NCBI GenBank assembly: GCA_002269645.1
Contig: NIVC01001111.1
Span: 124,001 to 188,000, forward strand
Source: Macrostomum lignano
Lineage: Eukaryota
Direction of reading: 5' to 3'
DNA: 64,000 nucleotides
Position numbers and translations under genes: made by a program. The notes under the pieces are model-generated. The model was not told the origin of the DNA. It did no database searches and saw only the letters and a list, made by a program, of their open reading frames with translations. This document shows positions 10,400 through 42,129 of this stretch, piece after piece (within the stretch, counting starts at the first letter, position 1; the number at the start of each line of letters is the position of its first letter).

Positions 10400-10607
10400 C
10401 TGCGAGCGCGGATTCGGAATGGAAAAGAGATGGTTTGATTAACCTCAACTATAAGCTGCACAAGTAATTAAGACTTTTGCGAAAATTCTCGTTTTACGAA
10501 ATCACAGACGGGCGTGTCGGGTAGCATACAGAATTGCAAAATGCGACACGCCCAGTACACGCCTGTAAAATGAGCTGGCATGAAAATTTAAGGGATCTTC
10601 AATTTTA

Positions 10608-13005
10608 TGGGATTGAAGGGTGATTCTCTATGAGATTGAAGGGCGATTCTCTATGAGATTGAAGGGCGATTCTCTGAGACTGAAGGGCGATTCTCCATGG
10701 GATTGAAGGGCGATTCTCTATGAGACTGAAGGGCGATTCTCTATGAGACTGAAGGGCGATTCTCCATGGGATTGAAGGGCGATTCTCTATGAGACTGAAG
10801 GGCGATTCTCTATGGGATTGAATGGTGATTCTCTATGAGACTGAAGGGCGATTCTCTATGAGACTGAAGGGCGATTCTCTATGGGATTGAAGGGCGATTC
10901 TCTGAGACTGAAGGGCGATTCTCTATGAGACTGAAGGGCGATTCTCTATGAGACTGAAGGGCGATTCTCCATGGGATTGAAGGGCGATTCTCTATGAGAC
11001 TGAAGGGCGATTCTCTGAGACTGAAGGGCGATTCTCCATGGGATTGAAGGGCGATTCTCTATGAGACTGAAGGGCGATTCTCTATGAGACTGAAGGGCGA
11101 TTCTCCATGGGATTGAAGGGCGATTCTCTATGAGACTGAAGGGCGATTCTCTATGGGATTGAATGGTGATTCTCTATGAGACTGAAGGGCGATTCTCTAT
11201 GAGACTGAAGGGCGATTCTCTATGGGATTGAAGGGCGATTCTCTGAGACTGAAGGGCGATTCTCTATGAGACTGAAGGGCGATTCTCTATGAGACTGAAG
11301 GGCGATTCTCCATGGGATTGAAGGGCGATTCTCTATGAGACTGAAGGGCGATTCTCCATGGGATTGAAGGGCGATTCTCTGAGACTGAAGGGCGATTCTC
11401 TATGAGATTGAAGGGTGATTCTCTATGAGACTGAAGGGCGATTCTCCATGGGATTGAAGGGCGATTCTCTATGAGACTGAAGGGCGATTCTCCATGGGAT
11501 TGAAGGGCGATTCTCCATGGGATTGAAGGGCGATTCTCTGAGACTGAAGGGCGATTCTCCATGGGATTGAAGGGCGATTCTCTATGAGACTGAAGGGCGA
11601 TTCTCTATGAGATTGAAGGGCGATTCTCTATGAGACTGAAGGGCGATTCTCTATGAGACTGAAGGGCGATTCTCCATGGGATTGAAGGGCGATTCTCTGA
11701 GACTGAAGGGCGATTCTCCATGGGATTAAAGGGCGATTCTCTATGAGACTGAAGGGCGATTCTCTATGAGACTGAAGGGCGATTCTCTATGGGATTGAAT
11801 GGTGATTCTCTATGAGACTGAAGGGCGATTCTCTATGAGATTGAAGGGCGATTCTCTATGAGATTGAAGGGCGATTCTCCATGGGATTGAAGGGCGATTC
11901 TTCATGGGATTGAAGGGCGATTCTCTATGAGACTGAAGGGCGATTCTCCATGGGATTGAAGGGCGATTCTCTATGAGACCGAAGGGCGGTTCTCTATGAG
12001 ACTGAAGGGCGATTCTCTATGAGACTGAAGGGTGATTCTCTATTAGACTGAAGGGCGATTCTCTATGAGACTGAAGGGCGATTCTCTATGAGACTGAAGG
12101 ATGATTCTCTATGAGATTGAAGGGTGATTCTCTATGAGACTGAAGGGCGATTCTCTATGAGATTGAAGGGCGATTCTCTATGAGATTGAAGGGCGATTCT
12201 CCATGGGATTGAAGGGCGATTCTCCATGGGATTGAAGGGCGATTCTCTATGAGATTGAAGGACGATTCTCTATGAGATTGAAGGGCGATTCTCTATGAGA
12301 TTGAAGGGCGATTCTCCATGGGATTGAAGGGCGATTCTCCATGGGATTGAAGGGCGATTCTCCATGGGATTGAAGGGCGATTCTCCATGGGATTGAAGGG
12401 CGATTCTCTGAGACTGAAGGGCGATTCTCCATGGGATTGAAGGGCGATTCTCTATGAGACTGAAGGGCGATTCTCTATGAGACTGAAGGGTGATTCTCTA
12501 TTAGACTGAAGGGCGATTCTCTATGAGACTGAAGGGTGATTCTCTATGAGACTGAAGGATGATTCTCTATGAGATTGAAGGGTGATTCTCTATGAGACTG
12601 AAGGGCGATTCTCTATGAGATTGAAGGGCGATTCTCTATGAGATTGAAGGGCGATTCTCTATGAGATTGAAGGGCGATTCTCCATGGGATTGAAGGGCGA
12701 TTCTCCATGGGATTGAAGGGCGATTCTCTATGAGATTGAAGGACGATTCTCTATGAGATTGAAGGGCGATTCTCTATGAGATTGAAGGGCGATTCTCCAT
12801 GGGATTGAAGGGCGATTCTCCATGGGATTGAAGGGCGATTCTCTATGAGATTGAAGGACGATTCTCTATGAGATTGAAGGGCGATTCTCTATGAGATTGA
12901 AGGGCGATTCTCCATGGGATTGAAGGGCGATTCTCCATGGGATTGAAGGGCGATTCTCCATGGGATTGAAGGGCGATTCTCCATGGGATTGAAGGGCGAT
13001 TCTTT
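10608..13005. repeat. Intronic minisatellite, 23-bp unit (21-bp variants), about 100 copies (Pumilio intron 2)
   Basis: Units gagactgaagggcgattctctat / gggattgaagggcgattctccat. Confidence 0.95.
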
Positions 13006-13092
13006 ATGGAGTTGGACTATACAGCTGGACTATACTATGGACTATACAGTTGGACTATACGAGTACTATAGACTATACACGAGAGCACTCAC

Positions 13093-14126: not shown

Positions 14127-14937
14127 GACAGTTATTGGTTAATAGACTGGCTTGCATTTGGGATAGGCTTGGGGCAGTTATTGGTTAATAGACTGGCTTG
14201 CATTCGGGATAGGCTTGGGGCAGTTATTGGTTAATAGACTGGCTTGCATTCGGGATAGGCTTGGGGCAGTTATTGGTTAATAGACTGGCTTGCATTTGGG
14301 ATAGGCTTGGGGCAGTTATTGGTTAATAGACTGGCTTGCATTTGGGATAGGCTTGGGGCAGTTATTGGTTAATAGACTGGCTTGCATTTGGGATAGGCTT
14401 GGGGCAGTTATTGGTTAATAGACTGGCTTGCATTTGGGATAGGCTTGGGGCAGTTATTGGTTAATAGACTGGCTTGCATTTGGGATAGGCTTGGGGCAGT
14501 TATTGGTTAATAGACTGGCTTGCATTTGGGATAGGCTTGGGGCAGTTATTGGTTAATAGACTGGCTTGCATTTGGGATAGGCTTGGGGCAGTTATTGGTT
14601 AATAGACTGGCTTGCATTTGGGATAGGCTTGGGGCAGTTATTGGTTAATAGACTGGCTTGCATTCGGGATAGGCTTGGGGCAGTTATTGGTTAATAGACT
14701 GGCTTGCATTTGGGATAGGCTTGGGGCAGTTATTGGTTAATAGACTGGCTTGCATTCGGGATAGGCTTGGGGCAGTTATTGGTTAATAGACTGGCTTGCA
14801 TTCGGGATAGGCTTGGGGCAGTTATTGGTTAATAGACTGGCTTGCATTTGGGATAGGCTTGGGGCAGTTATTGGTTAATAGACTGGCTTGCATTTGGGAT
14901 AGGCTTGGGGCAGTTATTGGTTAATAGACTGGCTTGC
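14127..14937. repeat. Intronic minisatellite, 46-bp unit, about 17.5 near-identical copies (Pumilio intron 1)
   Basis: Unit gggataggcttggggcagttattggttaatagactggcttgcattt; directly abuts the exon 2 acceptor. Confidence 0.95.
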
Positions 14938-14949
14938 TAGAGATGAGAT

Positions 14950-15320
14950 CATAGAGATGATTGCTGAGTGGTGTGTGGGATAGATGGGAGATGATTGCTG
15001 AGTGGGATAGATGGGAGATGATTGCTGAGTGGTGAATGGGAGATGATTGCTGAGTGGGATAGATGGGAGATGATTGCTGAGTGGTGTGTGGGATAGAGGG
15101 GAGATGATTGCTGAGTGGTGAATGGGATAGATGGGAGATGATTGCTGAGTGGTGTGTGGGATAGAGGGGAGATGATTGCTGAGTGGTGAATGGGATAGAT
15201 GGGAGATGATTGCTGAGTGGGATAGATGGGAGATGATTGCTGAGTGGTGAGTGGGATAGATGGGAGATGATTGCTGAGTGGGATAGATGGGAGATGATTG
15301 CTGAGTGGGATAGATGGAGA
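14950..15320. repeat. Intronic minisatellite, variable 29-36-bp unit (Pumilio intron 1)
   Basis: Core gggatagatgggagatgattgctgagt with optional ggtgtgt / ggtgaat. Confidence 0.9.
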
Positions 15321-15341
15321 TGGAAGAACCGCAGAACGCAC

Positions 15342-15878
15342 CTGATCGACAATCTTCATGCCCATGGCAATGAGATCTTTGCTATTAGGCGACAGAGCCT
15401 GGTCCTGCGACTGCACCAAGCCGTGCCGGTGCTGCTGGGCCAACTGGCCGCCGCCGCCACCGACGCCGGTCGACATGTCGATAGGCTGCGAGACGGCGTG
15501 CTCGCTGCTGCCGCCGACAATATCGACAGCGGCGGAAACCGCAGGCGGCCAGCCAGACGAATTTGAGCCGGATGAAACTGCCGGATTGCGATTGGCAGCA
15601 GCGGCCGAGGTCGGAATATCCCAGGGATAGGCGGCCTGGCCCTCCCAGATGCCGCCGCCGCCGCCTCCATCCTGGCTAGTCAGGTGGAACCGGTCGAACC
15701 GACTGCTAAGATCGGCGACCCCGCCGCCGCCTACGCCGCTAAGAAACTCGAGCCCATTGTCTGGGCCCCATCGTTTATCAACATAGGCATTGATTGAGTC
15801 TAGCTGCTGGCGCTGGAACTGATACGATACCTGGGCGTCGTCCTGCGAACGCGACAGATAGGCTGTGCGGTCTGACAT
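15342..15878 (-). CDS. pum: Pumilio coding exon 1 (low-complexity N-terminus)
   Basis: ATG at 15878; donor GATCAG|gtgcgt; 179 codons, phase 0 joining exon 2. No recognisable domain, so assignment rests on frame and splice compatibility. Confidence 0.78.
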
Positions 15879-18800
15879 ACTACTTACTGGCCTGCGAAGT
15901 TTTTAACTGAATTCGGCGACTCTACAATGTTATTTTTAATAGGCAACGTTTAGTTAATCAATAATGACAATACAATATACATATAGACAACATACTGAAT
16001 GCTTTCCAAGTCTTCATTTTTATTCAAAATAACTCTAGACTAATATACAAGCAATGTACTACTAAGGCTTTATAGTATCTATAGGACAAATGTAGGACAA
16101 ATAGGCTAGATAGACTTAGGCAATCTCTTATATCTAAAGCTGAGTGGATTGATCGATTGACCATTAGACTGGGTTTAATGCGTATTACAACTATATCTAA
16201 ATTATTAATGGTAAACACTGCTAAGTACATACCAATGAACACTAAGGCATTCTTAGGCATACCAAAATAGGAATCTCTTGTGACAAAAAATTATCATTTT
16301 ACTACTTACAAGAAAAAATAAATTAAGTGTAATATTTTTTTTCAGTACTATCTTTATTTCAACTAAATTTTTTTCTAAGACTTTTATTAGGCCTACTGAA
16401 TACTTATAATTCAATTTATATTCAACTATTAAGACTACTTAAAACTTATAGATATATTAACCAAAACATACTGACTTAATATTGAAGTAATACAAATGAT
16501 TTATATACTATAAAATTCTAGAGTATACTAAATGAGATATACATAATAATCATATTATAGCCAAAATTTACTTTGTCTATATCTTGGCTATTATATATCA
16601 ATACTAATGATTAAAACTTGGGTATTTTTAGCCTTTAAACATTCATTATTACCTTATAACTAGCTCTTTATTATTTTATATTGTTTATTATTTACTTATA
16701 ATATATATTGGGTCTAGTTAGACTTGAAATCAGAATATCTATGCTATCAAATTGATACTATGATTGATTAATTAATTAATTTATATTTTGAAACATAAGT
16801 GCCAATTTTTTTTTATTTTCTAAAAACTAATTTTGGGATCTTCCCAAGCTTATGCCAAATAGGCTAAGATCTAGAGAATTTATGTTTAATACAAATTTGC
16901 ACCATGCCATAGTAATCACTACTGTGACATTGATAATTCTTTTGTCTCTTTAGTTCTTTGGTTGGTATTTGCTAGGAATTTTTAATGTATATTTTGATTA
17001 TTTCAATATGTTGTATTTTTATGTCTGCTGAAAATGGTTAGCAACACTTTGTTTTACTAGGTTGGCAATACCTTATTTGACATTTTAAATTCTTTGGCTT
17101 CAAAGGAGACAGTTTTTGGGAGCTTCGCCAATAGTCTTATTGCTAACAAGTTAATTATTACAAGCATTATCAAAGAATGCTATCTGCCAGATCTAGAACT
17201 GCATCTAACCTAAGTAGGCCCTACCATATTTTCTTATAAGATCATAATCTCCAAAGCCACTCCAACCTAATTCATTACTTTGTTTGCTTATTAATTATAT
17301 ATACATATAATAATACTATCTAATAATATACTAATTTACTACTATCTATTTGAGAGAAAATACAAATAATCAAATCAAATAATTAGCAAGTTGGTCATCA
17401 ATCACAATCAAGGTTCAATATGTTTATTACTAGTTTTTATATATAAAGCAACTATCAACATACAAATCTTATATTTAATTAGATATTTGTTATACTCTAG
17501 GTTTTTAGTGCAAAATATATGTATGTACCCTAAATTAAAAAAATGCACCTTGAAATTGAAAAGTGAATACAGTTTAGGTATAGTCTTATAACCTTTTTTT
17601 TCTTTGAAGTCTCATTTGCCTCATTTGCTTTAAAACAAGAAAAAAATAAATTATAGGCCTACTTTGAGCTTTAAAATTGCACCTTGAAATTGAGCATAAG
17701 GTATAATTTCAAAAAGTTTTCTTTGGCAAAAAACCTAGTTTACACCCATAGACATAGTCAGGAAGATGGCCTTTTCATGGAAAATTTTGATGCAAAAAGG
17801 GGTTGGACATGTGCCGCACTAGTGCATTCCAGTGCAAAAACAAGCAAGGAAGAAAAATCCGGTGCAGTACAGTGCAAGACAAAAAAATTGATATAACTTG
17901 GTACAAGAAAAACTTCCAATGAGACAATATTTTCTCTAATAGAAAATTAGCATGTAGGCCTATAATTTCTTATAATTAGCACTTTTTGTTTGCTAATGTA
18001 TTGACAGCTTTTTAATTGATTTACATTAACATTACATTTTCTATCAAACATGTTCATAGACAAATTTTACTGACATTTTTCAAATAGAAAATAACTGATT
18101 TTTGCATGGCACAATTAAACTTTTTTGATAGGAATAGGCCTAGTTCTGACACACAGTGTAAGCAAAGTTTTTTGATAAGATTTGTTGTGGTGTACAGCGC
18201 AATCAAACTTTTTTTGATAGGATTCATTCTGGCACAGGCATGCCATAATCCTGACTATCTATGGGTTTACACTAGAATAATAATACTAATATTTAATAAT
18301 ATGTTTATATACATTAATGATTAATAGCAGGGTTTTATATCTAAATAAAAATAAAAATTCCATAAAAAGTAGGCCTATTTATTATTATTTATAATAACAC
18401 AATACATGATAATAGAATAGTAATAGTACAATATAGTTTAATAATAAATATATTTTATAGAATTTTTATTTACATAAAAACAATTTTGATATATAATAAT
18501 AATAAAACTGTCTATGAATAGCTAGAATAGGAAGGCAACCTTAATAAAGAGCTAAATGTTCAAGTCGTCAACTACCAAAATTGAAATCTCACATCGTCAC
18601 ATGTCTAATCTAAGAAACCTAAAATGACTTGTTGCACTTTATTTAATCTAGACAATCCAATAAGTTAAGAATGGAATACTTACTTTTGGTTTTATGTATA
18701 CAGATCAGATGTACAATATATACAGCCTGTACAATACTTTGAAAGCTTGCACTAGCAGGATTCAGATGCTTCAGGCAATGTAGATGCCAGGCAAATTACA

Positions 18801-20579
18801 ATTATCAGCGTGAAATCGAACAATATGTTACAACAATCACCAGATTGTATTTATTGCACGTGGTATTTACAAATAGTCGTAAGTACGTTCTTAAATTTTC
18901 CGGAAATTTTTTCGACTGTCTTTCCACCCTAATGGCCTCCGATCTCCCATAAAATAAGATAATCTCTCTAAATTATAATAGGGATAATTTAGACATGCAG
19001 CACACTGTTGGGTAACCATCCCTCGCCCGTCAGTCATGTCGAGTTAGTATATCTACCCCTTGTGGTTTAGTATCCTATATTCGATTTAACCTTTCCACAT
19101 CGCAGTTTTTAGATAGTTCTTATTCAAGGCAATTTAATTATATTTACAATTATTATTTAAGCAGTCTTTGCTGCTGCAAGAGAGAAGTGTTGTTGCTTTA
19201 GCCAAGGACTACTCAATTAGAGTAGCTGAGTAGTCCTTGGCTTTGGCTTTAGAAGAGAAGAGGTTCAGTATAATGTGTGATCTTTACAACCAGTACATTG
19301 ATTGCTTTTTGGAGCGCACTTTTTCCTTTTACATGAATTTACTTTGTTTCAATCTTCTGAAAACTTCTTAAAAGTTTATTAACCTTAGTAGTACATGGGA
19401 TTTTAATAATTATCAGATCTGCATCCTACGCTCGTAAAGGCCAGAGACTCACACGTAACCAAGTTTTGCGTGCTGTCCATTTGAGGAGGAAACCATAAAC
19501 CCTTTAGGTCCCCTAAGTCGAAGCGACTTACTGTATAGTAACAGGTTGAGAGTCCCGTCTTATTTGCAAAAAAATCTCTTGGTTTAATTTTGCTCCGGTG
19601 ACTGGTGTCATGCCTCTGGCACTGGACTTAAAACACGTACTGGAGCCACGAATGAGATGAATTTATGCATAAATGTAAAAGGGAGCGAGCCAAACATGTA
19701 CAAAACCAACGCCGGCCCTAGCTTGTTCAGTCGCGTGGATCTGCATGGTTATTTCACAAAAATGTGCTTAATTGTACACAATGGCACCAATTAGCACTAC
19801 GGTCTTACCAAGTACTTCTAGACTAAACTAGTTAGACTAGTTAGTCTAGAAGTCCTTGGGTCTTACATACATCATGCAATCACTCACATGTTACATGTAC
19901 ATACATGTACTCGTATATGTACATGTAATTGTTAACATGTAGCTGAATATGATAAATATTTTAAACAGTCTCACATACATGTTTATTTATATGTACATAG
20001 ATCGTAATAATTAATATTTGAAAATCAGCCGTTTTGCATGTTGTTCCAATACATAAATTAACTTTTACTATGTACGTCTTATATGCATACAGGTGCATAT
20101 ATAAAGTTTTTAGATTACTAAAGGAAAGAGCAAGTCACACGACATATATGCATTCCTTCTACCCACACTTCCTTTCTTTTCGTTCTTTCACACCCTATAG
20201 CTCGTTAAAAGGTAAGCGCTTGGCTTTGTTAGGACACACAGCTGTGCCCGAATGTGAGATTCAACATGCATGTTGGAGGAACTAACGGGGGGAGGAGGTT
20301 GGAGGCTTTAGCTTAAGACATTTTGGCGCATAGCGGCATAATATTATATAAGTGCGCATTAGTCGCCAAATAATAATTAGCACAGCTATTCAGCTAAAAT
20401 TAGCAAAACGAATCACAATTGCGAAAGTTTTCTCTGCTCGTGAGAGCCTTATAGGGTCAGCTACAAATTTGTATTATAGCCAGCGAAAACTAAGGGTCTA
20501 AGGCTCTATTTTCTAGATAAATATATAGGATTTTTTTAGCTAACCAGTACCTAATTTCATAATAGTCGAATTTGATCGA

Positions 20580-22253
20580 ATGCTGGCCAACAGGCGGCGT
20601 CAGGTGCTCCGTCTGGCCACCTCGGACCAGGCGTGCGAGGAGCTGCCGTTGACTGTCGCCGGCACTCAAAGCCATAGCATCGGCGGTGCCGGCCAGCAGG
20701 ACGCCTGGCAGCGACTGACAGAGCTGGAGCATCGCCTTCATCAGCCAGTGACCAGCGAACTCATTCAAAATAACAACAATAAGCCTGCTCAAACTAATAC
20801 ACTGTGCTCAATTTGCCACCAGTTGGACCGTCATTACCTGGTGTGGCGCCTGCCACCGGAGTCCGTTCGGCTGAGCCCGCAGGTGGGCCCGACCACATCG
20901 GAGTGGGCAGGCGCGGTGACTCGGGCAGCTGAGCGGGGCAGTCCGGTGCTGCAGAGCCTCTTTGACGAGCTACAAAACGACAACGGCTCGCTCACTTTCG
21001 ACCAATCAGAGCCCACCAGCCGTCTTGTAGCCGACGTTGCCGGCTTCCTCAGCGAGCTGGTCAGCTGTCAGCTGAGCGCCGAGCTGCCCGCAGTGTTCGG
21101 CGACGCCTCCGTCACCCTAATCGGCGGCTGGGCTCAGGAGACGGCGCTGACCAGCGAATTCCCCGTGCTGGACTTTGTGGTCAACCTGCCCGGCTGGGCC
21201 CGCGCCAGCCTTCTCTGCCTGTGCCAGCTGGCACCGGGCCGGGCCAACGGAGTCGTCGTGCGGCACCGCGCAGCCGGCCCGGCCCAGCTGGTTGAAGCAT
21301 CCGCGCCGCACCGGGCCTGCGCGTCCGCCATCGAAACCGCCGTGCTGCAGCGAGCGCTCGGCCTGCTCGAACAGCAGCGCGGCGGTGCCGGCTGGCGGAG
21401 TCGCTTGACGCCAAGCCGCGAGCTCGGCTGGTGGCGCCAGACCGGACGGGACTGGCCTGCGGAGGCCGCCCAGCCCAAGCGGCTGCGGCTCAACCTGGCC
21501 TGGCGGGGGCCGGACGATGCCGCCGCCCGCCTCTGCGGCGTCAACGTCTGGTTCGGCGTCCCCGTGCTGTTGATGGTCGGCGGGCCGCCCGAGGCGGAGC
21601 AGCGGCAGCTGCGCGGCCACCTCCTGCTGGGCGCCGGAGAGCCGCGGCTGCTCCGGCTGGCGCTGGAGGAGCGCCAATGGGCGCTGAGCCGCAGCCGCGG
21701 CTGCCACGACCCGCTGCCGCTGCTCTGCCGGGCGGCCAAATTCGTGCTGAAGCTCGGCGAATACCTGGCCGAGGACGTCAGCATGACCGGCGAGCACCGG
21801 CGCCAGCCGGATCTGTCGTTCTGCGTCAACTCGGCGCTGCGCGAGCTGGCGCTGCGTTACGGCGACAGCGGCGTCCGGCAGGAGGCCTTCGCCAAAGGCG
21901 CGGGTCTGCAGGACCGCCTGCTGGACCTGCTGCGGGCGCTGCTCGGATCGAGGCTCAGCCGGGAGGAGCCGGCCGTCTTCACGGAGTCGCTGCGGCTCGG
22001 TCTCAGCCAGCAGCAGACGTCCTCCGCATCTGCTTCGTCAGTGACGCCGCTGTCGGAGTCAACGGTGTCGATCGTGCGGTACCTGGAGCGCGCGAACCAG
22101 CTGCCGCAGGGCACGGAGAACCTGCTGCCCACCATGCTGCAGTATTTTCAGCTGAAAAACCAGCCGGACCGCCTGCTGCGGGGCGATGAAGACGACAGGC
22201 TGCTGGGGCTGGCCACTCAGATCTCCTTCGACCTGCTGACCCTGTCGGACTGA
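20580..22253 (+). CDS. Intronless Mab-21/cGAS-like (cGLR) nucleotidyltransferase-fold protein, probably catalytically degenerate, 557 aa
   Basis: GC-rich ORF with AATAAA at 22349-22354. Segment FGDASVTLIGGWAQETALTSEFPVLDFVVNL resembles the hG[GS]x9-13DhDh motif; the C-terminal half (LCRAAKFVLKL, LQDRLLDLLRALL, ENLL) resembles the Mab-21 helical lobe. Family call is by eye. Confidence 0.55.
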   Translation: MLANRRRQVLRLATSDQACEELPLTVAGTQSHSIGGAGQQDAWQRLTELEHRLHQPVTSELIQNNNNKPAQTNTLCSICHQLDRHYLVWRLPPESVRLSPQVGPTTSEWAGAVTRAAERGSPVLQSLFDELQNDNGSLTFDQSEPTSRLVADVAGFLSELVSCQLSAELPAVFGDASVTLIGGWAQETALTSEFPVLDFVVNLPGWARASLLCLCQLAPGRANGVVVRHRAAGPAQLVEASAPHRACASAIETAVLQRALGLLEQQRGGAGWRSRLTPSRELGWWRQTGRDWPAEAAQPKRLRLNLAWRGPDDAAARLCGVNVWFGVPVLLMVGGPPEAEQRQLRGHLLLGAGEPRLLRLALEERQWALSRSRGCHDPLPLLCRAAKFVLKLGEYLAEDVSMTGEHRRQPDLSFCVNSALRELALRYGDSGVRQEAFAKGAGLQDRLLDLLRALLGSRLSREEPAVFTESLRLGLSQQQTSSASASSVTPLSESTVSIVRYLERANQLPQGTENLLPTMLQYFQLKNQPDRLLRGDEDDRLLGLATQISFDLLTLSD

Positions 22254-22925
22254 TGGGGCCGAAGAAGATTATCTTGCAATTTTGTATTCAGCTATAATTA
22301 CATCGGAAAGTTGACGGTATAGAAAGAATCAAGTAGTAATCACAAATCAATAAATATATATACATATTTGCATTCGATTGCGACCAGGTGATTAGAAGTC
22401 AAATATCAGAGAGGTACATCTTACGCACAGGTACATCAAAGGTCAATTTGGTACATACATTTATATGTATGTCACAATATTTAAACATTAAAAGGAACAA
22501 ATTCTAGGATAGTTAACAGATAATTATATACTGGGTAACAGATAATGAGTGTAAGCGTATCTCAGATTTCCAGCTACCGGTTGTACTTTTACAGTTGATT
22601 ATAAAATGCCTGTTTTTGCATCCCCTCGATATTGTTTGTTCTTCCTAATTGGTAGCCAGATTACCTCATTATCCTCGTATGGGGAAAATCCCTCAACAGA
22701 GATCAGTGAATAAGATTATCCTTTAAAATTGAAACTTTGCTCGGGAAATGCGCCTATGTATATCCCTTCTGGAAAGCAAGAGACCAATACTCATATCTCA
22801 AGGGACGTCGGCATGGATTTTATGATGGAGGGGGCAAGCCAAGAATTCTACATGCACATGACTAAATTCCTACATGTACATTGTTATGAGAATCAGTGTT
22901 CTTAGCACCCTTTTTTGCGCCCAGG

Positions 22926-25233
22926 CCCTCATTTTGGCGCCACAGGCAGACACTCATTTTGGCTCCACAGACAGGCACTCATTTTGGCTCCACAGACAGG
23001 CACTCATTTTGGCTCCACAGACAGGCACTCATTTTGGCTCCACAGACAGGCACTCATTTTGGCTCCACAGACAGGCACTCATTTTGGCTCCACAGACAGG
23101 CACTCATTTTGGCTCCACAGACAGGCACTCATTTTGGCTCCACAGACAGGCACTCATTTTGGCTCCACAGACAGGCACTCATTTTGGCTCCACAGACAGG
23201 CACTCATTTTGGCTCCACAGACAGGCACTCATTTTGGCTCCACAGACAGGCACTCATTTTGGCTCCACAGACAGGCACTCATTTTGGCGCCACAGGTAGG
23301 CACTCATTTTGGCGCCGCAAGCAGGCACTCATTTTGGCGCCACAGGCAGGCACTCATTTTGGCGCCACAGGCAGGCACTCATTTTGGCGCCACAGGCAGG
23401 CACTCATTTTGGCTCCACAGACAGGCACTCATTTTGGCGCCACAGGCAGGCACTCATTTTGGCTCCACAGACAGGCACTCATTTTGGCTCCACAGACAGG
23501 CACTCATTTTGGCGCCACAGGTAGGCACTCATTTTGGCGCCGCAAGCAGGCACTCATTTTGGCGCCACAGACAGGCACTCATTTTGGCGCCACAGGCAGG
23601 CATTCATTTTGGCGCCGCAGGCAGACACTCATTTTGGCGCCACAGGCAGGCACTCATTTTGGCTCCACAGACAGGCACTCATTTTGGCGCCACAGGTAGG
23701 CACTCATTTTGGCGCCACAGGCAGGCACTCATTTTGGCGCCACAGGCAGGCACTCATTTTAGCGCCACAGGCACTCATTTTGGCGCCGCAGGCAGACACT
23801 CGTTTTGGCGCCACAGACAGGCACCCATTTTGGCGCCGCAAGCAGGCACTCATTTTGGCGCCACAGGTAGGCACTCATTTTGGCGCCGCAAGCAGGCACT
23901 CATTTTGGCGCCACAGGCAGGCACTCATTTTGGCGCCACAGGCAGGCACTCATTTTGGCGCCACAGGCAGGCACCCATTTTGGCGCCACAGGCAGGCACC
24001 CATTTTGGCTCCACAGACAGGCACCCATTTTGGCGCCACAGGCAGGCACTCATTTTGGCGCCACAGACAGGCACTCATTTTGGCGCCACAGGCAGGCACT
24101 CATTTTGGCGCCACAGGCAGGCATTCATTTTGGCGCTGCAGGCAGACACTCATTTTGGCGCCACAGGCAGGCACTCATTTTGGCGCCACAGGCAGGCATT
24201 CATTTTGGCGCCGCAGGCAGACACTCATTTTGGCGCCACAGGCAGGCACTCATTTTGGCGCCACAGGCAGGCACTCATTTTGGCGCCACAGGCAGACACT
24301 CATTTTGGCTCCACAGACAGGCACTCATTTTGGCTCCACAGACAGGCACTCATTTTGGCGCCACAGGCAGGCACTCATTTTGGCTCCACAGACAGGCACT
24401 CATTTTGGCGCCACAGGTAGGCACTTATTTTGGCGCCACAGGCAGGCACTCATTTTGGCGCCACAGGCAGGCACTCATTTTAGCGCCACAGGCACTCATT
24501 TTGGCGCCGCAGGCAGACACTCGTTTTGGCGCCACAGACAGGCACTCATTTTGGTGCTGCAGGCAGGCACTCATTTTGGCGCCGCAGGCAGGCACTCATT
24601 TTGGCGCCACAGGCAGGCACCCATTTTGGCGCCGCAAGCAGGCACTCATTTTGGCGCCACAGGTAGGCACTCATTTTGGCGCCGCAAGCAGGCACTCATT
24701 TTGGCGCCACAGGCAGGCACTCATTTTGGCGCCACAGGCAGGCACTCATTTTGGCGCCACAGGCAGGCACTCATTTTGGCGCCACAGGCAGGCACCCATT
24801 TTGGCTCCACAGACAGGCACCCATTTTGGCGCCACAGGCAGGCACTCATTTTGGCGCCACAGACAGGCACTCATTTTGGCGCCACAGGCAGGCATTCATT
24901 TTGGCGCCACAGGCAGGCATTCATTTTGGCGCTGCAGGCAGACACTCATTTTGGCGCCACAGGCAGGCACTCATTTTGGCGCCACAGGCAGGCATTCATT
25001 TTGGCGCCGCAGGCAGACACTCATTTTGGCGCCACAGGCAGGCACTCATTTTGGCGCCACAGGCAGGCACTCATTTTGGCGCCACAGGCAGACACTCATT
25101 TTGGCTCCACAGACAGGCACTCATTTTGGCTCCACAGGCAGGCACTCATTTTGGCGCCACAGGCAGGCATTCATTTTGGCGCCGCAGGCAGACACTCATT
25201 TTGGCGCCGCAAGCAGGCACTCATTTTGGCGCC
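22926..25233. repeat. Minisatellite, 25-bp unit, about 92 copies
   Basis: Unit ggcactcattttggc(g/t)ccacag(g/a)ca; stop-free on the plus strand, producing the 141-567 aa repetitive ORFs. Confidence 0.95.
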
Positions 25234-26018: not shown

Positions 26019-26778
26019 GTACCTGGGAGGTACATGTAGAGATGTCCTACCTGGGATGTACATGTAGAGGTGTCCTACCTGGGAGGTACATGTAGAGGTG
26101 TCCTACCTGGGAGGTACATGTAGAGGTGTCCTACCTGGGAGGTACATGTAGAGGTGTCCTACCCGGGAGGTACATGTAGAGATGTCCTACCTGGGATGTA
26201 CATGTAGAGATGTCCTACCTGGGATGTACATGTAGAGGTGTCCTACCCGGGAGGTACATGTAGAGGTGTCCTACCTGGGATGTACATGTAGAGATGTCCT
26301 ACCCGGGAGGTACATGTAGAGGTGTCCTACCTGGGAGGTACATGTAGAGGTGTCCTACCTGGGAGGTACATGTAGAGGTGTCCTACCTGGGAGGTACATG
26401 TAGAGATGTCCTACCTGGGATGTACATGTAGAGATGTCCTACCCGGGAGGTACATGTAGAGGTGTCCTACCTGGGAGGTACATGTAGAGGTGTCCTACCT
26501 GGGAGGTACATGTAGAGGTGTCCTACCTGGGAGGTACATGTAGAGGTGTCCTACCTGGGATGTACATGTAGAGGTGTCCTACCTGGGATGTACATGTAGA
26601 GGTGTCCTACCTGGGAGGTACATGTAGAGGTGTCCTACCCGGGATGTACATGTAGAGGTGTCCTACCCGGGATGTACATGTAGAGATGTCCTACCTAGGA
26701 GGTACATGTAGAGGTGTCCTACCTGGGAGGTACATGTAGAGGTGTCCTACCTGGGAGGTACATGTAGAGGTGTCCCAC
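26019..26778. repeat. Minisatellite, 28-bp unit, about 27 copies
   Basis: Unit ctacctgggaggtacatgtagaggtgtc containing the palindrome TACATGTA. Confidence 0.95.
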
Positions 26779-27398
26779 ATGGTTCGTATTCTTAGAGGAG
26801 AGCACAATCTAACAAAGAGCATATATGTATACGTTAAAGACTGTGAATACAGCGAGTCATGCAATACCGCTCCTCCACCTAAGTCTCCATGCTTGAATGC
26901 CAGAATAGACATGGATGGACTGACTCAGGACTACTAAATGTTCTTATGTAGTGGAACTTCGCCCCCAACAAACTTGTTTTCTGCATGCCTCTATTCTGTC
27001 CACTTCGTGCCAAGATTTGATGGGGCTTTTCATACGACTCGTTTCCAGTCCAGCGGAATTCTATACATGTTTATAGGAGTCCCTGGACTTTAACCCCTGG
27101 GATTTAGCGGCAGACAACAGCTGTTCCTGCCTTAGCTGGGTGGGGGGGGGGTGTTGAGCTCTGAGCGACTCTGGTTTTTGTACGAGTAGAATACCGCGCT
27201 ATATTGGAAGCCATACCGGATAGCCCAATAAACAATTAAAGATTGTCCGGAATGGGACCTGGGGATCCAGGGGAGCGCCAGATTTGGAATATTTGTGGTT
27301 TCATTAAAGTCAGAAATTTCTCAGAATTGAATTAACTCTCTGCCAGATAATTCAGTTGGCAGAGAGCGTAAATAAAATGAAAACTATAAAAGACTGAG

Positions 27399-29929: not shown

Positions 29930-30904
29930 TCAGGAATGACCGCCGCCCTGCTTCTTGCGCCTGTTAATATAATAGAGCGGCTTCTGCTGCTGCTGCTGAG
30001 CCCTGGACGGCTCCAGCAGCTCCTTCGGCACATCCGACAGCGGGTCCGCCCGGCCTCCGCCCCCAGAGCCGCCGTCGCCGCCGCTGGACCCGCCAGCCGA
30101 GGACCGCTTCGGGGAATCGCCGCCGCCGCCTCCGCCAGCGGCCGCTCTCAGTCGGGACAGCAGCCCGGAGAGCGCGGCGGCCACGGCCGGGCCAATCAGA
30201 TCGCGGTGGTGGGCCAGCAGCAGCACGAGGGCGGTGAATGGAATCAATAGGAACGAGCCAGTACTGATCTCGCGCTCCGATAAGCGCCTAGTGGCGGCAA
30301 AGTCGAAGTGCAAATTCACGGCGCTGCCGTTAGACAGGAAGCGGCGCTCCTCGGTGCCAAACGAATACAGGTGGCGGGGCAGGCGGCTGTGCAGGGTGAC
30401 CACGTACTGCTGATTGTCATTCGGCACGGCGCTGGAGTACATGAGGATGCGGTCGGCCAGGTCGCAGGCGTCCGTAAGGCGACCGGGGCTGAGCTCCGGG
30501 TGTACGGTCAGGTGCAGCGATTGACGCTGCTCGCGATTCTTGGCCGACACGGTGACAAACAGGTCGGTGTGGCCCGGCCGCGGCAGGCCGTAGAACACCA
30601 GGCCGGTGGCGTCGGCCGCGGCCACGGTGACGGACTCGGACGGCGGCAATGTCCGGTCTACGGCCGGCTGTCCGGGCCGCACGGAGACGTTATAGCGGCA
30701 GCCAGAGGCAAGGCCGCGCAGGCGGAACTCACCACCAGCGTCCGTGTCGGCCGTCTCGGTGCCCTGCTGGCAGGCCGAGTCGGGGACGCCCGTGACGGCA
30801 ATGTCAGCCAGCGGCGCGCCAGACAGGGAGACCACGCGGCCGTAGGCTGAGTAGCCGGTGCGGACTGGGCGTAGGGTGACCTCAGTGACCTCGCCCTCCT
30901 TCAC
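29930..30904 (-). CDS. NOMO: Nodal modulator (NOMO) coding exon 5, last; includes TM helix and cytosolic tail
   Basis: gcatccag|GTG; VKEGEVTEV...GYSAYGRVVSLSG...GEFRLRGL; TM FLLIPFTALVLLLA; stop 29930-29932. Confidence 0.88.
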   Translation of the reverse strand: MKEGEVTEVTLRPVRTGYSAYGRVVSLSGAPLADIAVTGVPDSACQQGTETADTDAGGEFRLRGLASGCRYNVSVRPGQPAVDRTLPPSESVTVAAADATGLVFYGLPRPGHTDLFVTVSAKNREQRQSLHLTVHPELSPGRLTDACDLADRILMYSSAVPNDNQQYVVTLHSRLPRHLYSFGTEERRFLSNGSAVNLHFDFAATRRLSEREISTGSFLLIPFTALVLLLAHHRDLIGPAVAAALSGLLSRLRAAAGGGGGGDSPKRSSAGGSSGGDGGSGGGGRADPLSDVPKELLEPSRAQQQQQKPLYYINRRKKQGGGHS

Positions 30905-31122
30905 CTGGATGCAGTTTAGCGAATAAATAGGTTTCAATTTGTAATAGAAAAATAACACTTTGTTCTACTGAAAGTAGGATGCACAAAGTGCCGATTCCAG
31001 TTGAAAATCAAAGAGAACTCATCGAGCATCAGATTTGCATTTTTTACGATTTCTCGCCCTTCCTTCTAAGAGCTACTTGGGATGGCATAAAACTGACTAA
31101 CTGGCCATCTATCTGGTTGCTT

Positions 31123-31258
31123 TTACACTTCAATGTGCCTTGGGGTTTGGCCCTTGAGGGCGTTAATTGCACGAGCAGAGCCAAGCCGAGATTCCAATTT
31201 AGCCCCTAATTAATGTGACTGCACTTGGAATCGAGCCTGAGCTGCTGGCACATAAGAG
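31123..31258 (-). mobile_element. SINE family A fragment
   Basis: Reverse complement matches the B box ggctcgattcc and following body (gctaaattggaatctcggcttggctctgctcgtgcaattaacg) of 9813-10177. Confidence 0.75.
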
Positions 31259-31299
31259 TTAGACTAATTAACTAATAATTAATAATTAATTAATTAATA

Positions 31300-31594
31300 A
31301 TGATTACACCTAGCCTAGTGAGCATATGTGCAACCGACAGCTCAGCCGCAGCTATTGCGCGGCGCATCTGAAGGCTGCATACGGCTGTTCAGTTCAAAGA
31401 CTGGGAGGTCGCCACACACACCCTCAATAACCCCAGCTAATGCTGGCACCAATTTTACAGCTGGATGAACTGAAGCAATGCAGAGTTATAAGTGTCTTGC
31501 TCAAGGACACAAATAGTTCCGAGTGGGATCGGGAATCGAACCCCCGACATTCAAATCGCAAATCTGACGCTCTGACTACTAGGCTACAACCCCC
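31300..31594 (-). mobile_element. tRNA-derived SINE, family B, with CORE-like central domain
   Basis: Head ggggttgtagcctagtag...ggggttcgattcc; central tgtgtccttgagcaagacactt...cagctgtaaaat; AT-rich tail; near-identical to 42130-42413. Confidence 0.82.
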
Positions 31595-31610
31595 TAACTA
31601 ACTAACTAAT

Positions 31611-31655
<45 letters not shown>

Positions 31656-31758
31656 GACTAACTGACTAACTGACTAACTAACTAACTAACCAACTAATCA
31701 ACTAACTAACTAACTAACTCACTAAATAACTAAATAACTAACTAACTAACTAACTAGT

Positions 31759-31829
<71 letters not shown>

Positions 31830-31845
31830 TTAGTTAACTAACTAC
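31595..31845. repeat. (AACT)n microsatellite (NOMO intron 4)
   Basis: About 60 copies of taac. Confidence 0.93.
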
Positions 31846-31899
31846 CTAATAACTAAAAATCCAACTCAGCCTCAGCCGCAGACACCCGGATCTCCTCAC

Positions 31900-33054
31900 C
31901 ATAACCTCGGCGCTGGCGGGCTCGAAGCGGAACTCCTTCACCATGCCTCTCACGTAGTACCGGCCGGGCATCAGATCCGAGAACACGGCCAGGCCGGCCG
32001 AGTCAGTGGCCTGATGAAACCTGGACGAGTCGCCGCTCATGGACACCAGCACGCTGGGCAGGCCACTCTGCACGTGCACGCCGGCCAGGCGGTGGGCCCG
32101 CAGGGTGCGCCGCTCGTCCGGCCGCTTGCACGGCCGCTCCTCGAACCGGTAGCCAGTCAGGCGGCCGGCCAGCTGGTAGGCCCGGTCCGCCAGCACCGGC
32201 CCGAATTCGAACCGGCCGTCCGGGCCAGTTGTCAGCGAAGCCACCGCCTCGACCTCGCCCTCCGACTCCGACGCCCCGCCGGCCAGTTGAAGCGACACCT
32301 CGACGCCGGACAGTGGCGGTTCGACTTGGCCGACAATTCGCTGACCGCGCCGGACAGTGAAGCGAAGAGTCTGCGGCTGGCAGGACAGCGGGTCCATGAC
32401 GGTCAGGCCGGCTGTGGCCGGCTCCAGCACCGAGTTGTTGGCCAGGATGCGAGCCTCCAGCACAGCGCCGGCCGGGTAGTGCATGTCGACAACTGCGACC
32501 GGCGGCTCCTGCGACTTGGCCGGCGGCTTCAAGTTAAACTGGCCGGCCGGTTTGCCGTCGGCTGTCAGATCGATTCGGACAGGCTCGCCGGATCTGCCGC
32601 CGATGTCCGGATAGTCGGCGGCCAGCCGGACAAGGAAAGCGGCGGCCGAGAAGCTGACTGAGTCGCCCGGCCGTTCCAGCTTGGCGGTGTCGGCGGCCAG
32701 CCGGTGGCAGGAGGCGGCCCGCAGCTGCAGAGGTGGAGTGGCCGGGCTGTCCAAGCAGATCTCGGTGCGGCCCTGGGCCACCCGAATCGTGTTCGGCTTG
32801 GCGCCAGAGGCGGGCGAGTAGCTCAACTCGAGGTCGTGACTAGAGGATACGAAGGCTTTGAAGCCGGTGACGCGAAATTCCAGGGTCTTGGGCTTGTTGG
32901 ACAGGTCGGTCACTTGGAGCTGGCGCGAGGCCCAGCATAGCAGGTCGCCGCCGGCCAGGGTGGCCGTGTAGGTGCCGGGCAGCTGGCCGGGTAGGCTAAA
33001 TGCGCCGTTGGCGGTAACCGGAGCGGTGCTAGTCTCCTCGCCGGATAGGGTCAC
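31900..33054 (-). CDS. NOMO: NOMO coding exon 4
   Basis: accaacag|GTG ... ATG|gtgagg; VSMSGD...FSDLMPGRYYVRGMVKEFRFEPAS matches the NOMO pattern; 385 codons. Confidence 0.88.
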
Positions 33055-33239
33055 CTGTTGGTAATGGTGAGCACAATTGATTGGAGACGGAAAATGCTAA
33101 TTCATGTCGGTAGTTGGGAGTTGAGTCACATAGGAACTTGTGAGAGGGTGTCACGCCGAAAATGGGGGAGGGAGTGATTCACAGAAGATAGGAGTGAGTC
33201 ACAGCGGAAGTTGGGAGAGTGAGCTACACCGGGTCATAC

Positions 33240-33700
33240 GGGGAGTAGGGAGAGTCGTGAGTCATACCGGAAGTTGAGAGTCATGGGAGTCATCCGGAAG
33301 TTGAGAGTCATGGGAGTCATACCGGAAGTTGAGAGTCATGGGAGTCATACCGGAATTATACCGGAAGTTAAGAGTCATGGGAATTATACCGGAATTTGAG
33401 AGTCGTAGGAGTCATCCGGAAGTTGAGTCATAGGAGTCATTCGAAAAATGGGTCATCGGAGTCAAACCGGAAGTTGAGAGTCATGGGAGTCATCCGGAAG
33501 TTGAGAGTCATGGGAGTCATCTGGAAATTGATCCATGGGAGTCATTCGGAAGTTGAGAGTCATGGGAGTCATCCGGAAGCTGAGAGTCATGGGAAGTCAT
33601 ACCGGAAGTTGAGAGTCATGGGAAGTCATACCGGAAGTTGAGAGTCATGGAAGTCATCCGGAAGCTGAGAGTCATGGGATTCATTCGGAAGTTGAGATTT
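33240..33700. repeat. Intronic minisatellite, 27-29-bp unit (NOMO intron 3)
   Basis: Unit ccggaagttgagagtcatgggagtcat. Confidence 0.85.
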
Positions 33701-33792
33701 TTCACACAGGATGACGGGCTCGTGGAGATAGGGAGGCAGGAAGACGCTGACACCTGAAAGAGCGGGCCAAATAATGAGTCCACAAATCTCAC

Positions 33793-34320
33793 CTGCAGAT
33801 CGGCGGGACACTGCCCCCCAGGACAGCCGACAACTTTGCCGTTAACTTCAACCCGCTGCTCCTTAAGCAACAGTCCAGTTGTCGGGCCGCTGACTGTGAT
33901 TTCTCGCTGCGCCCGGCCGCAGCGCAGAACGTGCCGGTCGGCCGTCAGGTAGATGCAAAACGTGCCGTCCTGCTCAGTTTCCGACGCTTCAATGTCCGGC
34001 ACGCTTAGGCTGGTCACCGGCCGGACGCCGAGGCCTTCGGCTCGGCCGCAGACGCGAAATTTATCAGGACGAATGTCGGTTGAGAAGGCCAGGGAGTCCG
34101 TGCGGCCAGGCAGGAACAGCATGTCCGGATAGGTCACCTGAACTGTCCAGCTGGAGCGTCGCTCCGGACAGTGCAGCAGGAATCGGCCGTCGGCGCCGGT
34201 GTCCGTTTCGATAGATGACGACGACGACGAGCCCTGGGGCTCAACAAGGCGGACGTGGGCGCCGGACAGGGCCGCGCCGTCTGGGCCGACTACGCGACCG
34301 CGGAGCACGACTCCGGTGGC
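33793..34320 (-). CDS. NOMO: NOMO coding exon 3
   Basis: cacgcacag|GCC ... CAG|gtgaga; ATGVVLRGRVVGPDG...FRVCGR; 176 codons. Confidence 0.85.
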
Positions 34321-34622
34321 CTGTGCGTGAGATGGAGAATTCAATAAGGACTAAGGAGGGCGGCGTCACGTGATACCCGGTGCAGTTTACACTGGGGTAG
34401 GTTGGAGATGGGAGAGAGTATACGAGTAGATGGTTAGGAAACTTTTGGGAGGGGGGGGGCAAAGGTATATGCAGAAGTTGGAAAGGAGTGAGAGGCACGA
34501 GCAGATACGGAGGCTGAAGACAGGCGAGAGGAGTGGCAGGTGGACCGGGATAGGTGAAAAGTACAGCAAGCTAGGCGAGATGGGGAGGTTAGCATTCCTG
34601 GAAACCAAAGCGAGCCAAACAC

Positions 34623-35243
34623 CTTGAACACGCTGCCCATGTGCAGGTCGGCGTGCCGCACCCGCAGGCTGAGCCGGTCGGGCTCGATCCGATAGTCCGG
34701 ATGGAACGGCACCAGAGTGTACTCGCCTCCGGGCACGTCAACAAATCGGCCAACCCCGTCGGCGCCGGTGACGGCCCGGCAGAGCGGTCGCTCGGTCGGC
34801 GGCAGAGGCGAGCGGAATTCCGGATGCGGTTTGCCGGGCTTCTCACATTTGACGCCGTCGGCCAGTGCGCCGTACAGGTAGAGCTGGGCGCCGGCGCCGA
34901 CATCGGCCAGGCCGGCCGACACGGCGAAGCCTTTCACAACCAGAGCATCGCCCGGTTTAGCGTTGTCATTGGCAACGTCCACGTCTAGGCGGTCTTTCTC
35001 GAAAGCGGCCGCCCCGCCGCCGGCAGGCAGATCCGGTCGGACAGTGTACTGGCCGGGCGGCACCCGGACGAACACAAATTTGCCATCGGCGTCGGTGGAG
35101 TTGGCCGCCAGTTTTGAGCCAGAGCGACGGTCGATTAGCGCCAGCGGCAGGTCGGGCGGCCCGGTGCGCAGGCCCCTGGTGTGCACGGAGCCGTATATGG
35201 CGTAGCCTAGCAGGCGGAAGTCGAGATCGCGCTGGCAGGAGTC
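34623..35243 (-). CDS. NOMO: NOMO coding exon 2
   Basis: Preferred acceptor ccccgagcag|GAC (nearby in-frame alternatives exist), donor AAG|gtgttt; DLDFRLLGYAIYGSV...DGKFVFVRVPPGQY...YTLVPFH; 207 codons. Confidence 0.8.
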
Positions 35244-35302
35244 CTGCTCGGGGTATTTGGTGGGTTGCTGGCGCTCGACTAACTATAATATACACTTTAC
35301 AG

Positions 35303-35970
35303 ACAAAGACATCAGGATTGAGATGGCAACTAACCACTTCACAAACAAAGACCTCAAGATTGAGATGCTAACTAAACATTTACCAAACAAAGACCTCAGG
35401 ATTGAGGAGATGCTAACTAACCACTTCACAAACAAAGACCTCAGATTGAGATGCTAACTAAAAATTTACCAAACAAAGACCTCAGGATTAAGATGCTAAA
35501 TAAATCCTTCTCAAAAAGACTTCAAGATTGAGATGCTAACTAAACACTTAACAAACGAAGACCACAAGATTGAGATGCTAACTAAACACTTAACAAACGA
35601 AGACCACAAGATTGAGATGCTAACTAAACACTTAACAAACGAAGACCACAAGATTGAGATGCTAACTAACCACTTCACAAACAAAGACCTCAGATTGAGA
35701 TACTAACTAAACAGTTCTCAAACAAAGACCTCAGATTGAGATACTAACTAAACAGTTCTCAAACAAAGACCTCAGATTGAGATACTAACTAAACAGTTCT
35801 CAAACAAAGACCTCAGATTGAGATGCTAACTAAAAATTTACCAAACAAAGACCTCAGCATTAAGATGCTAAATAAATCCTTCTCAAAAAAGACTTTAAGA
35901 TTGAGCTGCTAACTAAACACTTAACAAACAAAGACCTCAGATTGAGCTGCTAACTAAACCCTTCTCAAAC
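35303..35970. repeat. Intronic minisatellite, about 41-42-bp unit (NOMO intron 1)
   Basis: Unit aacaaagacctcagattgagatgctaactaaacagttctca with variants. Confidence 0.88.
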
Positions 35971-36003
35971 AAAGAGCTGAAGATTAGGCAGAGTCAGACT
36001 GAC

Positions 36004-36342: not shown

Positions 36343-36486
36343 TTGTTTCTCAGGCATGAGGTTAAACATTGGCATATTACAATACTGGCTGTCGATCCTA
36401 TTACTGCAAATCGGACCACCAGCCACATAAAGCGAAAATGGCAATCTATGAAGACTGGGATGTCCATGAATGGAATGAAGAATGAG

Positions 36487-41328: not shown

Positions 41329-41394
41329 CTGAATCGCATTTAGGCAGTGTATAATAAAAGCTGGGACTAACGGTAAACTAAACCATACCAGCCT

Positions 41395-41645: not shown

Positions 41646-41691
41646 TATTCTAAATCTCAACTATGCAATGCGGCAATGTAAATTCACGCAC

Positions 41692-42028: not shown

Positions 42029-42129
42029 CTGCGTGTTTGGAAATGCGAATGAATAGCAATGGAAAATTGCAGTTGCAACTAAAATATTGTAAATTAATTC
42101 AATTCTAGCGCCGTAATATTAATAATAAC

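Follow-up and report, generated by a model that had tools for sequence, protein, structure and literature searches.

A single-exon gene of a taxonomically restricted family in Macrostomum lignano, possibly encoding a non-catalytic nucleotidyltransferase-like protein

We analyzed an open reading frame (ORF) in a 64,000-nucleotide stretch of the genome of the flatworm Macrostomum lignano (GenBank assembly GCA_002269645.1, contig NIVC01001111.1, positions 124,001 to 188,000 of the forward strand; hereafter, the window, to which all coordinates refer unless another locus is named). A previous interpretation made from the letters alone (hereafter, the sequence-only reading) had described it as an intronless cGAS/Mab-21-like protein that appeared to be a pseudo-nucleotidyltransferase. 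We found a taxonomically restricted gene that possibly encodes a non-catalytic nucleotidyltransferase (NTase)-like protein; true descent from the Mab-21/cGAS-like receptor (cGLR) proteins is unlikely. Our best guess, to which we give somewhat less than an even chance and which draws on predicted structure, is a degenerate, catalytically dead NTase-like core that would bind a ligand or partner and might be metal-stabilized through CxxC and CxC motifs.

A native protein-coding gene

The single-exon coding sequence occupies positions 20580..22253 of the forward strand, running from ATG to TGA over 557 codons plus the stop and encoding 557 amino acids. The coordinates and peptide strings of the sequence-only reading match this frame: IGGWAQETALTSEFPVLDFVVNL lies at residues 181–203, VNVWFGVP at residues 321–328, and CSICH at residues 76–80, and an AATAAA follows downstream. 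The flanking signals are the following.

20531-20539, forward strand: T7-AG, 40 nt 5' of the ATG, at which an untranslated leader might be joined by splicing or trans-splicing; the acceptor role is predicted from the sequence.
20541-20543, forward strand: in-frame TAA, directly after the T7-AG and 39 nt upstream of the ATG.
22349-22354, forward strand: AATAAA polyadenylation-signal consensus, 96 nt past the stop.

The ORF is a genuine, native, protein-coding gene, as indicated by its codon-position GC (0.73/0.49/0.84), by same-base shuffles, none of which (0/2000) reached an open frame of at least 557 codons (the longest was 539), by its GC content, which is 68.7% against 36–37% in either flank and changes sharply at the start codon and at the stop, and by codon use like that of its neighbors. 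Its GC at third codon positions (GC3) equals that of exons of the adjacent NOMO gene (0.84–0.85), and its relative synonymous codon use correlates with that of pooled exons of NOMO, Pumilio, and phosphomannose isomerase (PMI) at r = 0.89. The remaining five frames across the ORF carry 6–17 stops. The shuffles and codon-position GC rule out a chance ORF in GC-rich DNA; native codon use, together with the finding of no relatives outside M. lignano among 1.84e9 proteins or in metagenome, prokaryote, and viral contigs, rules out a foreign, bacterial, or viral origin. Because an in-frame TAA stands at 20541, M1 is the start codon. The T7-AG could be a leader acceptor, and the earlier claim of an intronless gene is therefore established for the coding sequence alone.

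A family so far found only in M. lignano

An exhaustive phmmer scan of 1.84 billion cluster-representative proteins returned only two true relatives, both hypothetical proteins of M. lignano: BOX15_Mlig002013g1 (PAA90499.1, UniRef A0A1I8HZX6; 538 aa, E 4e-29; hereafter, P0001) and UniRef A0A1I8IYD4 (437 aa, E 3e-24; hereafter, P0002). Their database names stem from fused gene models, and both are uncharacterized. A third match of the same scan, P0003, was discarded as a low-complexity repeat artefact. Word-seeded searches of 5.8 billion proteins, queried with the protein and with an alignment of the three sequences, gave zero matches, and no relatives were found in metagenome, prokaryote-genome, and viral contig collections. 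The exact window protein is not on record in public protein sets. The literature yielded nothing on the M. lignano gene, nor on nucleotidyltransferases in Macrostomum.

Pairwise identities among the three proteins are 27–32% (BLASTP), and since the proteins are about equidistant, the window protein represents a third deep branch with no close ortholog. Synonymous sites are saturated between the window gene and its ~30%-identical homologs. The P0001 gene, on a 973-kb contig, has three coding exons with GC3 of 0.83–0.87, and the GC3-rich codon style of the window gene recurs in the exons of both relatives. The family is taxonomically restricted, consisting so far of the window protein and two old paralogs in Macrostomum lignano. 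Taxonomically restricted genes are common in flatworm genomes.

Conserved residues across the three proteins

The three-way alignment holds 70 invariant columns, which are concentrated at residues 181–220 (15 of 40 residues invariant) and 341–400 and are absent beyond residue 400. The blocks that the window protein shares with P0001 and P0002 are the CxxC (C76, C79), LIG[GS]WA..AL, LD[FY]V..P.W....LC.C, H.A....[IV]E..V, PK, FG.P, GHLL.G, LA.EE, D.P, and a K-F helix. The parts of the protein, some of them from models predicted by AlphaFold2 (AF2) and scored by the predicted local distance difference test (pLDDT), are as follows.

20805..20816, forward strand: CxxC (C76, C79), invariant in all three proteins.
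21009..21095, forward strand: long helix predicted by AF2 at residues 144–172, before the first core strand, with the model's top confidence (pLDDT ~75 at residues 151–160).
21114..21239, forward strand: most conserved block, residues 179–220, with the LIG[GS]WA..AL strand, the LD[FY]V strand bearing the single invariant Asp, P.W, and LC.C.
21300..21374, forward strand: conserved helix H.A....[IV]E..V, residues 241–265, from the alignment and AF2.
21474..21578, forward strand: strands at residues 299–333, including PK and VNVWFGVP, with F325, G326, and P328 invariant.
21600..21779, forward strand: second conserved block, residues 341–400, with GHLL.G, LA.EE, D.P, and the K-F helix; the helical C-terminal half begins here.
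21780..22250, forward strand: helical C-terminal tail, residues 401–557, with no invariant column; weakly alignable to P0001 and absent in the P0002 model.

The sequence-only reading had drawn attention to a G[GS] motif keeping only one of two acidic residues, and this pattern recurs in homologs that it never saw: G182, G/S183, and D198 are invariant or conservatively kept in P0001 and P0002, and the residue two before D198 is V, T, or M (contexts V-L-D-F, T-L-D-Y, and M-M-D-F). It had also named VNVWFGVP as the likely third-Asp strand, which lacks an acidic residue in the ORF, P0001, and P0002 alike. Both of the other carboxylate positions are thus non-acidic in all three proteins, and an NTase core, if present, is therefore catalytically dead. 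Further invariant acidic residues are E252, E363, E364, D377, and D399.

Invariant residues are enriched in Cys (4/11), Phe, Pro, and Trp, and the invariant Cys include C213 and C215, which form a CxC. At CSICH, the possible metal site of the sequence-only reading, both Cys of the CxxC are conserved and the His is not. At the N-terminus, residues 1–15 (MLANRRRQVLRLATS, 20580-20625) are arginine-rich, the first acidic residue being D16, and resemble a mitochondrial presequence; as the two M. lignano relatives do not have this stretch, it is probably not a feature of the family.

Predicted fold and a possible non-catalytic core

From the single sequence, AF2 produced an unusable model (pLDDT 37.7). 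The three-sequence alignment raised mean pLDDT to 43.4, with a predicted template modeling score (pTM) of 0.37 and pLDDT of 60–78 in parts of the core. The elements of this model are, in order, a long helix at residues 144–168, a strand at 179–185 carrying the G[GS], a short helix at 187–190, strands at 196–202 (with D198), 211–217, and 225–227, a long helix at 241–265, four further strands, and the helical C-terminal half. The Pol-beta-type superfold is defined by an alpha-beta-alpha-beta core in which hG[GS] stands between strand 1 and helix 2 and the carboxylates sit on strand 2 and an adjacent strand. In this low-confidence model, the sequence of elements, with the G[GS] and D198 where they are, is the one expected of such an NTase core with a helical lobe behind it.

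When the three-sequence model was compared with the PDB by Foldseek, the first-ranked match was a CD-NTase, CdnE of Rhodothermus marinus (6e0k; E = 0.16, TM 0.24, root-mean-square deviation (rmsd) 17 Å), a best but non-significant structural neighbor, and 17 of the best 50 matches were Pol-beta-fold NTases from four families (CdnE, poly(A) polymerases, Pol mu, and Tailor). The G-S-aromatic-A..T-A-L loop and the hydrophobic Asp strand after it may resemble the GS...DhD signature of CD-NTases. CD-NTases differ in having the full carboxylate triad, of which two of three members are missing in the ORF; moreover, no CD-NTase model of PADLOC, NCBIfam, or Pfam matched the ORF, which has no prokaryotic relatives.

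We infer a fold of the NTase type, the binding of a ligand or partner, and a metal site, and propose the following. The single-exon gene would give rise to a soluble protein of the restricted family, with a conserved domain of ~260 residues (~140–400) made up of a helix, a beta-sheet with the G[GS]-W-A loop and the Asp, a helix, further strands, and a helical lobe. Its core would be of a strongly degenerate, Pol-beta-type nucleotidyltransferase-like kind that has lost two of the three metal-binding carboxylates. Two-metal nucleotidyl transfer would be impossible in such a core, which might instead bind another protein or a ligand resembling a nucleotide, so that the protein would serve as an adaptor or scaffold and not as a signal producer. 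The invariant C76/C79 and C213/C215 may form a structural metal site.

If this NTase-like reading is right, the protein would resemble MiD51/MiD49 and MAB21L1/2 in combining the NTase shape and an incomplete triad with binding in place of catalysis, and in placing a helical lobe after an alpha/beta core. These Mab-21 pseudo-enzymes differ from the ORF in that no sequence or profile relationship between them is detectable, in the longer spacing of the ORF (~124 aa) from its Asp strand to the later one, and in the N-terminal CxxC, internal CxC, and lack of an N-terminal membrane anchor of the window protein.

Several results weigh against an NTase-like core. There is no statistically significant link between the ORF and any NTase: all Foldseek matches have E > 0.1, with TM of 0.15–0.24 and rmsd of 15–17 Å, and the single-sequence model gave helical noise with zero NTase matches. 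AF2 may simply reproduce the short GS...D pattern that the sequence-only reading had noticed. At E ≤ 10, neither the ORF nor P0001 matched any Pfam family, and P0002 matched no relevant one; Mab-21 (PF03281) and Mab-21_C (PF20266), two of the domains that reading had proposed to look for, were unmatched by all three proteins. Scans with PADLOC (CD-NTase models included) and NCBIfam likewise yielded no relevant match for any of the three. Among PDB sequences, phmmer and profile hmmsearch at E ≤ 10 matched no NTase, cGAS, or cGLR; weak matches to a TetR repressor and a zinc protease domain were judged spurious. A raised profile score against MiD51, described below, was also reached by 5/200 block-6 and 18/200 block-12 shuffles, and the local alignment behind it is out of register, setting LIGGW on the second strand of MiD51 and not on its SGS loop. 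Finally, the ~124 residues between D198 and the putative third strand exceed the 50–90 allowed in the published cGLR definition (Li et al. 2023, PMC9980059).

In the structural check suggested by the sequence-only reading, the rank of CdnE and the 17 NTases among 50 matches speak for an NTase-type core, and a pLDDT of 43 and the lack of significance against it. No cGAS, OAS, MAB21, MiD, or cGLR chain was among the best 50, despite dozens of distinct cGAS sequences in the PDB. A Foldseek comparison with a viral structure library returned noise. Taken as a model-based result, the dead nucleotidyltransferase-type core is a weak lead.

An NTase-unrelated fold is almost as likely as the dead NTase-like core. 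We see a substantial chance that the window encodes a taxonomically restricted protein in which the G[GS]...D is coincidental and the conserved Cys, Trp, Gly, and Pro residues serve a lineage-specific, perhaps zinc-stabilized structure. Consistent with this, sequence, profile, and structure searches gave no significant link to known families, the motif is short and degenerate, an hhalign comparison with Mab-21 equals its shuffled null, and the enrichment in Cys (4/11), Phe, Pro, and Trp suits any compact fold. A coincidental motif is harder to square with the finding that residues picked a priori by the sequence-only reading proved invariant in the homologs; in addition, the order of secondary structure agrees with an NTase core, and four independent NTase families appear in the Foldseek best 50, where no other enzyme fold of comparable size recurs. 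A bolder form of the NTase-like reading, in which the family would be an unrecognized and extremely divergent offshoot of the cGAS/OAS/CD-NTase fold in macrostomids, now non-catalytic and possibly a zinc-stabilized sensor or adaptor, and would constitute a new pseudo-enzyme family, is doubtful.

Tests of Mab-21/cGAS membership

As set out by Li et al. (2023, PMC9980059), cGLRs carry the active-site motif h[QT]GS [X8-20] [DE]h[DE]h [X50-90] h[DE]h, sequence homology over the C-terminal helix bundle as well as the NTase core, and AlphaFold2-predicted direct structural homology to cGLR/CD-NTase enzymes. We searched with a relaxed form of this motif, allowing G[GS] and spacers of up to 40 and 140 residues. 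Mouse cGAS and cGLR1 pass, and the ORF, P0001, P0002, and, like them, the pseudo-enzyme MAB21L1 fail; all three flatworm proteins thus lack the catalytic motif of cGLRs.

In controls for the homology searches, the Mab-21 and Mab-21_C domains were found in all of the listed MAB21 control proteins (120/120), and human MAB21L1 (a query essentially identical to 5EOG) recovered cGLR1 (2e-33), cGAS (~1e-19), MB21D2 (1e-8), and MiD51 (4e-4) by plain phmmer. For profile comparison we combined ten MAB21 orthologs across phyla with cGLR1 (8GJY) and mouse cGAS (4LEY); the protein search for MAB21 gave only close MAB21L1/2 orthologs, and diversity was supplied by the cGLR1, mouse cGAS, MiD51, and OAS1 chains. 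Against this profile, hhalign gave the flatworm alignment a probability of 0.16–0.19% and a score of 15.9; column-shuffled flatworm profiles scored 15.0 +/- 2.6, with 33% reaching the observed value, and global and low-mact modes brought no improvement.

Two proteins calibrated these negatives. MiD51 (4NXT), the most divergent accepted Mab-21 pseudo-enzyme member, reached 98% probability (E 1e-13) against the same profile, and OAS1 (4IG8), a known structural relative of cGAS, reached 0.17%. As MiD51 is recovered, the negatives rule out that the ORF is a Mab-21 member about as divergent as MiD51; as OAS1 itself stays at 0.17%, they leave room for a shared fold at the distance that separates OAS from cGAS.

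Compared with MiD51 alone, the flatworm core scored 22.5 (probability 1.9%), a value that 1/400 column shuffles reached; unrelated real proteins (n = 12) scored 17.9 at most. The signal came mainly from one member, the window protein scoring 19.3 and its relatives 14.8 and 11.6, and a combined Mab-21 and MiD51 profile gave 0.69%. In view of the block shuffles, the single-member scores, the combined profile, and the register, we dropped the MiD51 similarity as evidence of membership.

By sequence comparison, membership of the ORF in the Mab-21/cGAS family is not demonstrable, and the original cGAS/Mab-21-like assignment does not stand. A very divergent but true descendant of the Mab-21/cGAS-like receptors, whether a MiD49/51-like pseudo-enzyme or a sensor variant, has a slim chance. 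It would account for a block order that by eye is shared with Mab-21 (GS strand, hDh strand, F..h helix, P.h.h strand, LA.EE, and [CV]R..KF helix), a likeness that is statistically unsupported. It would also account for two hhalign alignments in which the FET.VHQA helix falls on its counterpart in Mab-21 or MiD51, the helix at residues 241–265 being the one element so placed on Mab-21, without statistical support, and for the rarity of the MiD51 score among column shuffles. Against such descent stand the unmatched Pfam domains, a low profile probability, with a score that one-third of shuffles reach and a probability still at 0.7% with MiD51 added, and the ease with which MiD51 and the other MAB21L1 relatives are found by the same methods. 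The cGLR motif and sequence homology described above are lacking, the structural match is non-significant, and no Mab-21-family chain stands in the Foldseek best 50.

An active nucleotidyltransferase in which non-canonical metal ligands such as E252 or E363/E364 replace the lost carboxylates is very improbable. The strict retention of the G[GS] and one Asp and the invariance of E252, E363, E364, D377, and D399 would suit it, but those acidic residues lie in predicted helices and not on the strand beside D198, and the NTase fold is itself unproven. The full triad is required in all known active enzymes of the cGLR, CD-NTase, and OAS groups (PMC9980059).

Origin of the single-exon state

The introns of P0001 lie after residues ~186 and ~361, and the coding sequence of the window gene, in contrast to that of P0001, is continuous through both positions. 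Downstream of the ORF we found no A-rich tract or poly(A) remnant, and the window holds no parent copy. A 16-nt direct repeat, TATTCAGCTA[A/T]AATTA, 15/16 identical, flanks the ORF at 20387-20402 and 22285-22300. One copy precedes the ATG by 178 nt and the other follows the stop by 31 nt, with no A-tract adjoining, and the repeat is the sole candidate for a target-site duplication; by a rough estimate it is marginally unexpected, and it is most likely a chance occurrence in AT-rich DNA. The suggestion that the gene is possibly a retrogene therefore keeps the contrast with the two introns of P0001 in its favor and lacks both a poly(A) remnant and a convincing target-site duplication. At ~30% identity, retrogene hallmarks would have decayed; the contrast with P0001 may stem from retroposition, from the loss of introns, or from their gain in the M. 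lignano lineage, origins that these data do not distinguish.

Least probable of all is a non-functional retrocopy or decaying, unexpressed ORF: the uninterrupted coding sequence, the absence of the exact protein from public protein sets, and the flanking repeat might hint at one, but drift and stops would be expected in a dead copy, and the gene has 557 intact codons, strong codon-position bias, and host-like codon use between flanks of 36% GC, with no poly(A) remnant, no A-tract at the repeat 31 nt past the stop, and no parent copy in the window.

Genomic neighborhood

The neighboring genes are the following.

Exons between 8504 and 15878, reverse strand: Pumilio (PUF repeats), multi-exon; 15878 is the start of the 5'-most recognizable coding exon.
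29930-36444, reverse strand: NOMO, multi-exon.
40795-44937, reverse strand: leucine-rich repeat (LRR) protein gene, multi-exon.
47847-51194, reverse strand: PMI, multi-exon.

The ORF and Pumilio form a divergent pair across a gap of 4.7 kb, in agreement with the head-to-head arrangement and the spliced neighbors noted by the sequence-only reading. In the long open frame of Pumilio at 14949-15878, the 3' part (14954-15322, reverse strand) is a 34/61-bp tandem repeat with the translation PSIPLSNHL...; judging from the sequence, the true exon probably ends near 15330, the remainder being an intronic minisatellite.

Minisatellites with 16–60-bp units are abundant in the window, chiefly in introns and intergenic DNA, with arrays at 22922-25233, 10606-13008, 14129-14937, 26020-26782, 45083-46279, and ~25 other places. 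One array of 93 copies of a 25-bp unit begins 670 bp past the stop of the ORF. Between 22915 and 25388, minisatellites create spurious open frames of 500–567 aa in several frames, similar in length to the real gene, and such frames are a trap for scanning by ORF length.

NOMO (29930-36444, reverse strand) sits tail-to-tail downstream of the ORF. Also tail-to-tail, downstream of the P0001 gene, is a gene with a Peptidase_M28 domain (E 5e-5; 15381-20819 of the P0001 locus, reverse strand), which we take to be Nicalin-like. Nicalin is the partner of NOMO in the BOS complex. A minisatellite intervenes in both pairs. From the sequence, these NOMO and Nicalin-like neighbors may be a coincidence or a leftover of old linkage.

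An Rfam tRNA match within a NOMO intron (31524-31593, reverse strand; 40.6 bits, E 4e-5), with no ARAGORN call, directly adjoins a (CTAA)66 microsatellite at 31594-31856 and is probably, by its sequence, a tRNA-derived repeat or degenerate tRNA gene. Transposon remnants lie at 56588-56968, 59218-59682, and 61354-61962 (all forward strand); two of these three ORFs have a Mos1/mariner HTH_48 domain (E 4e-3 and 1e-8), and one has a hAT C-terminal dimerization region (E 1e-3).

Implications

A clean ORF and a short GS...D pattern were insufficient for a Mab-21 call in this case, and the calibrated controls, in which MiD51 was detected and OAS1 was not, mark what the methods used here can and cannot exclude. 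Without a fold or phenotype, the finding is an ordinary one of modest value. Flatworms are not known to have cGLR signaling apart from Mab21-like proteins. If the NTase-like reading is true, the family would be a new, profile-invisible pseudo-enzyme family for the cGAS/OAS/CD-NTase fold, and flatworms would keep a remodeled relative.

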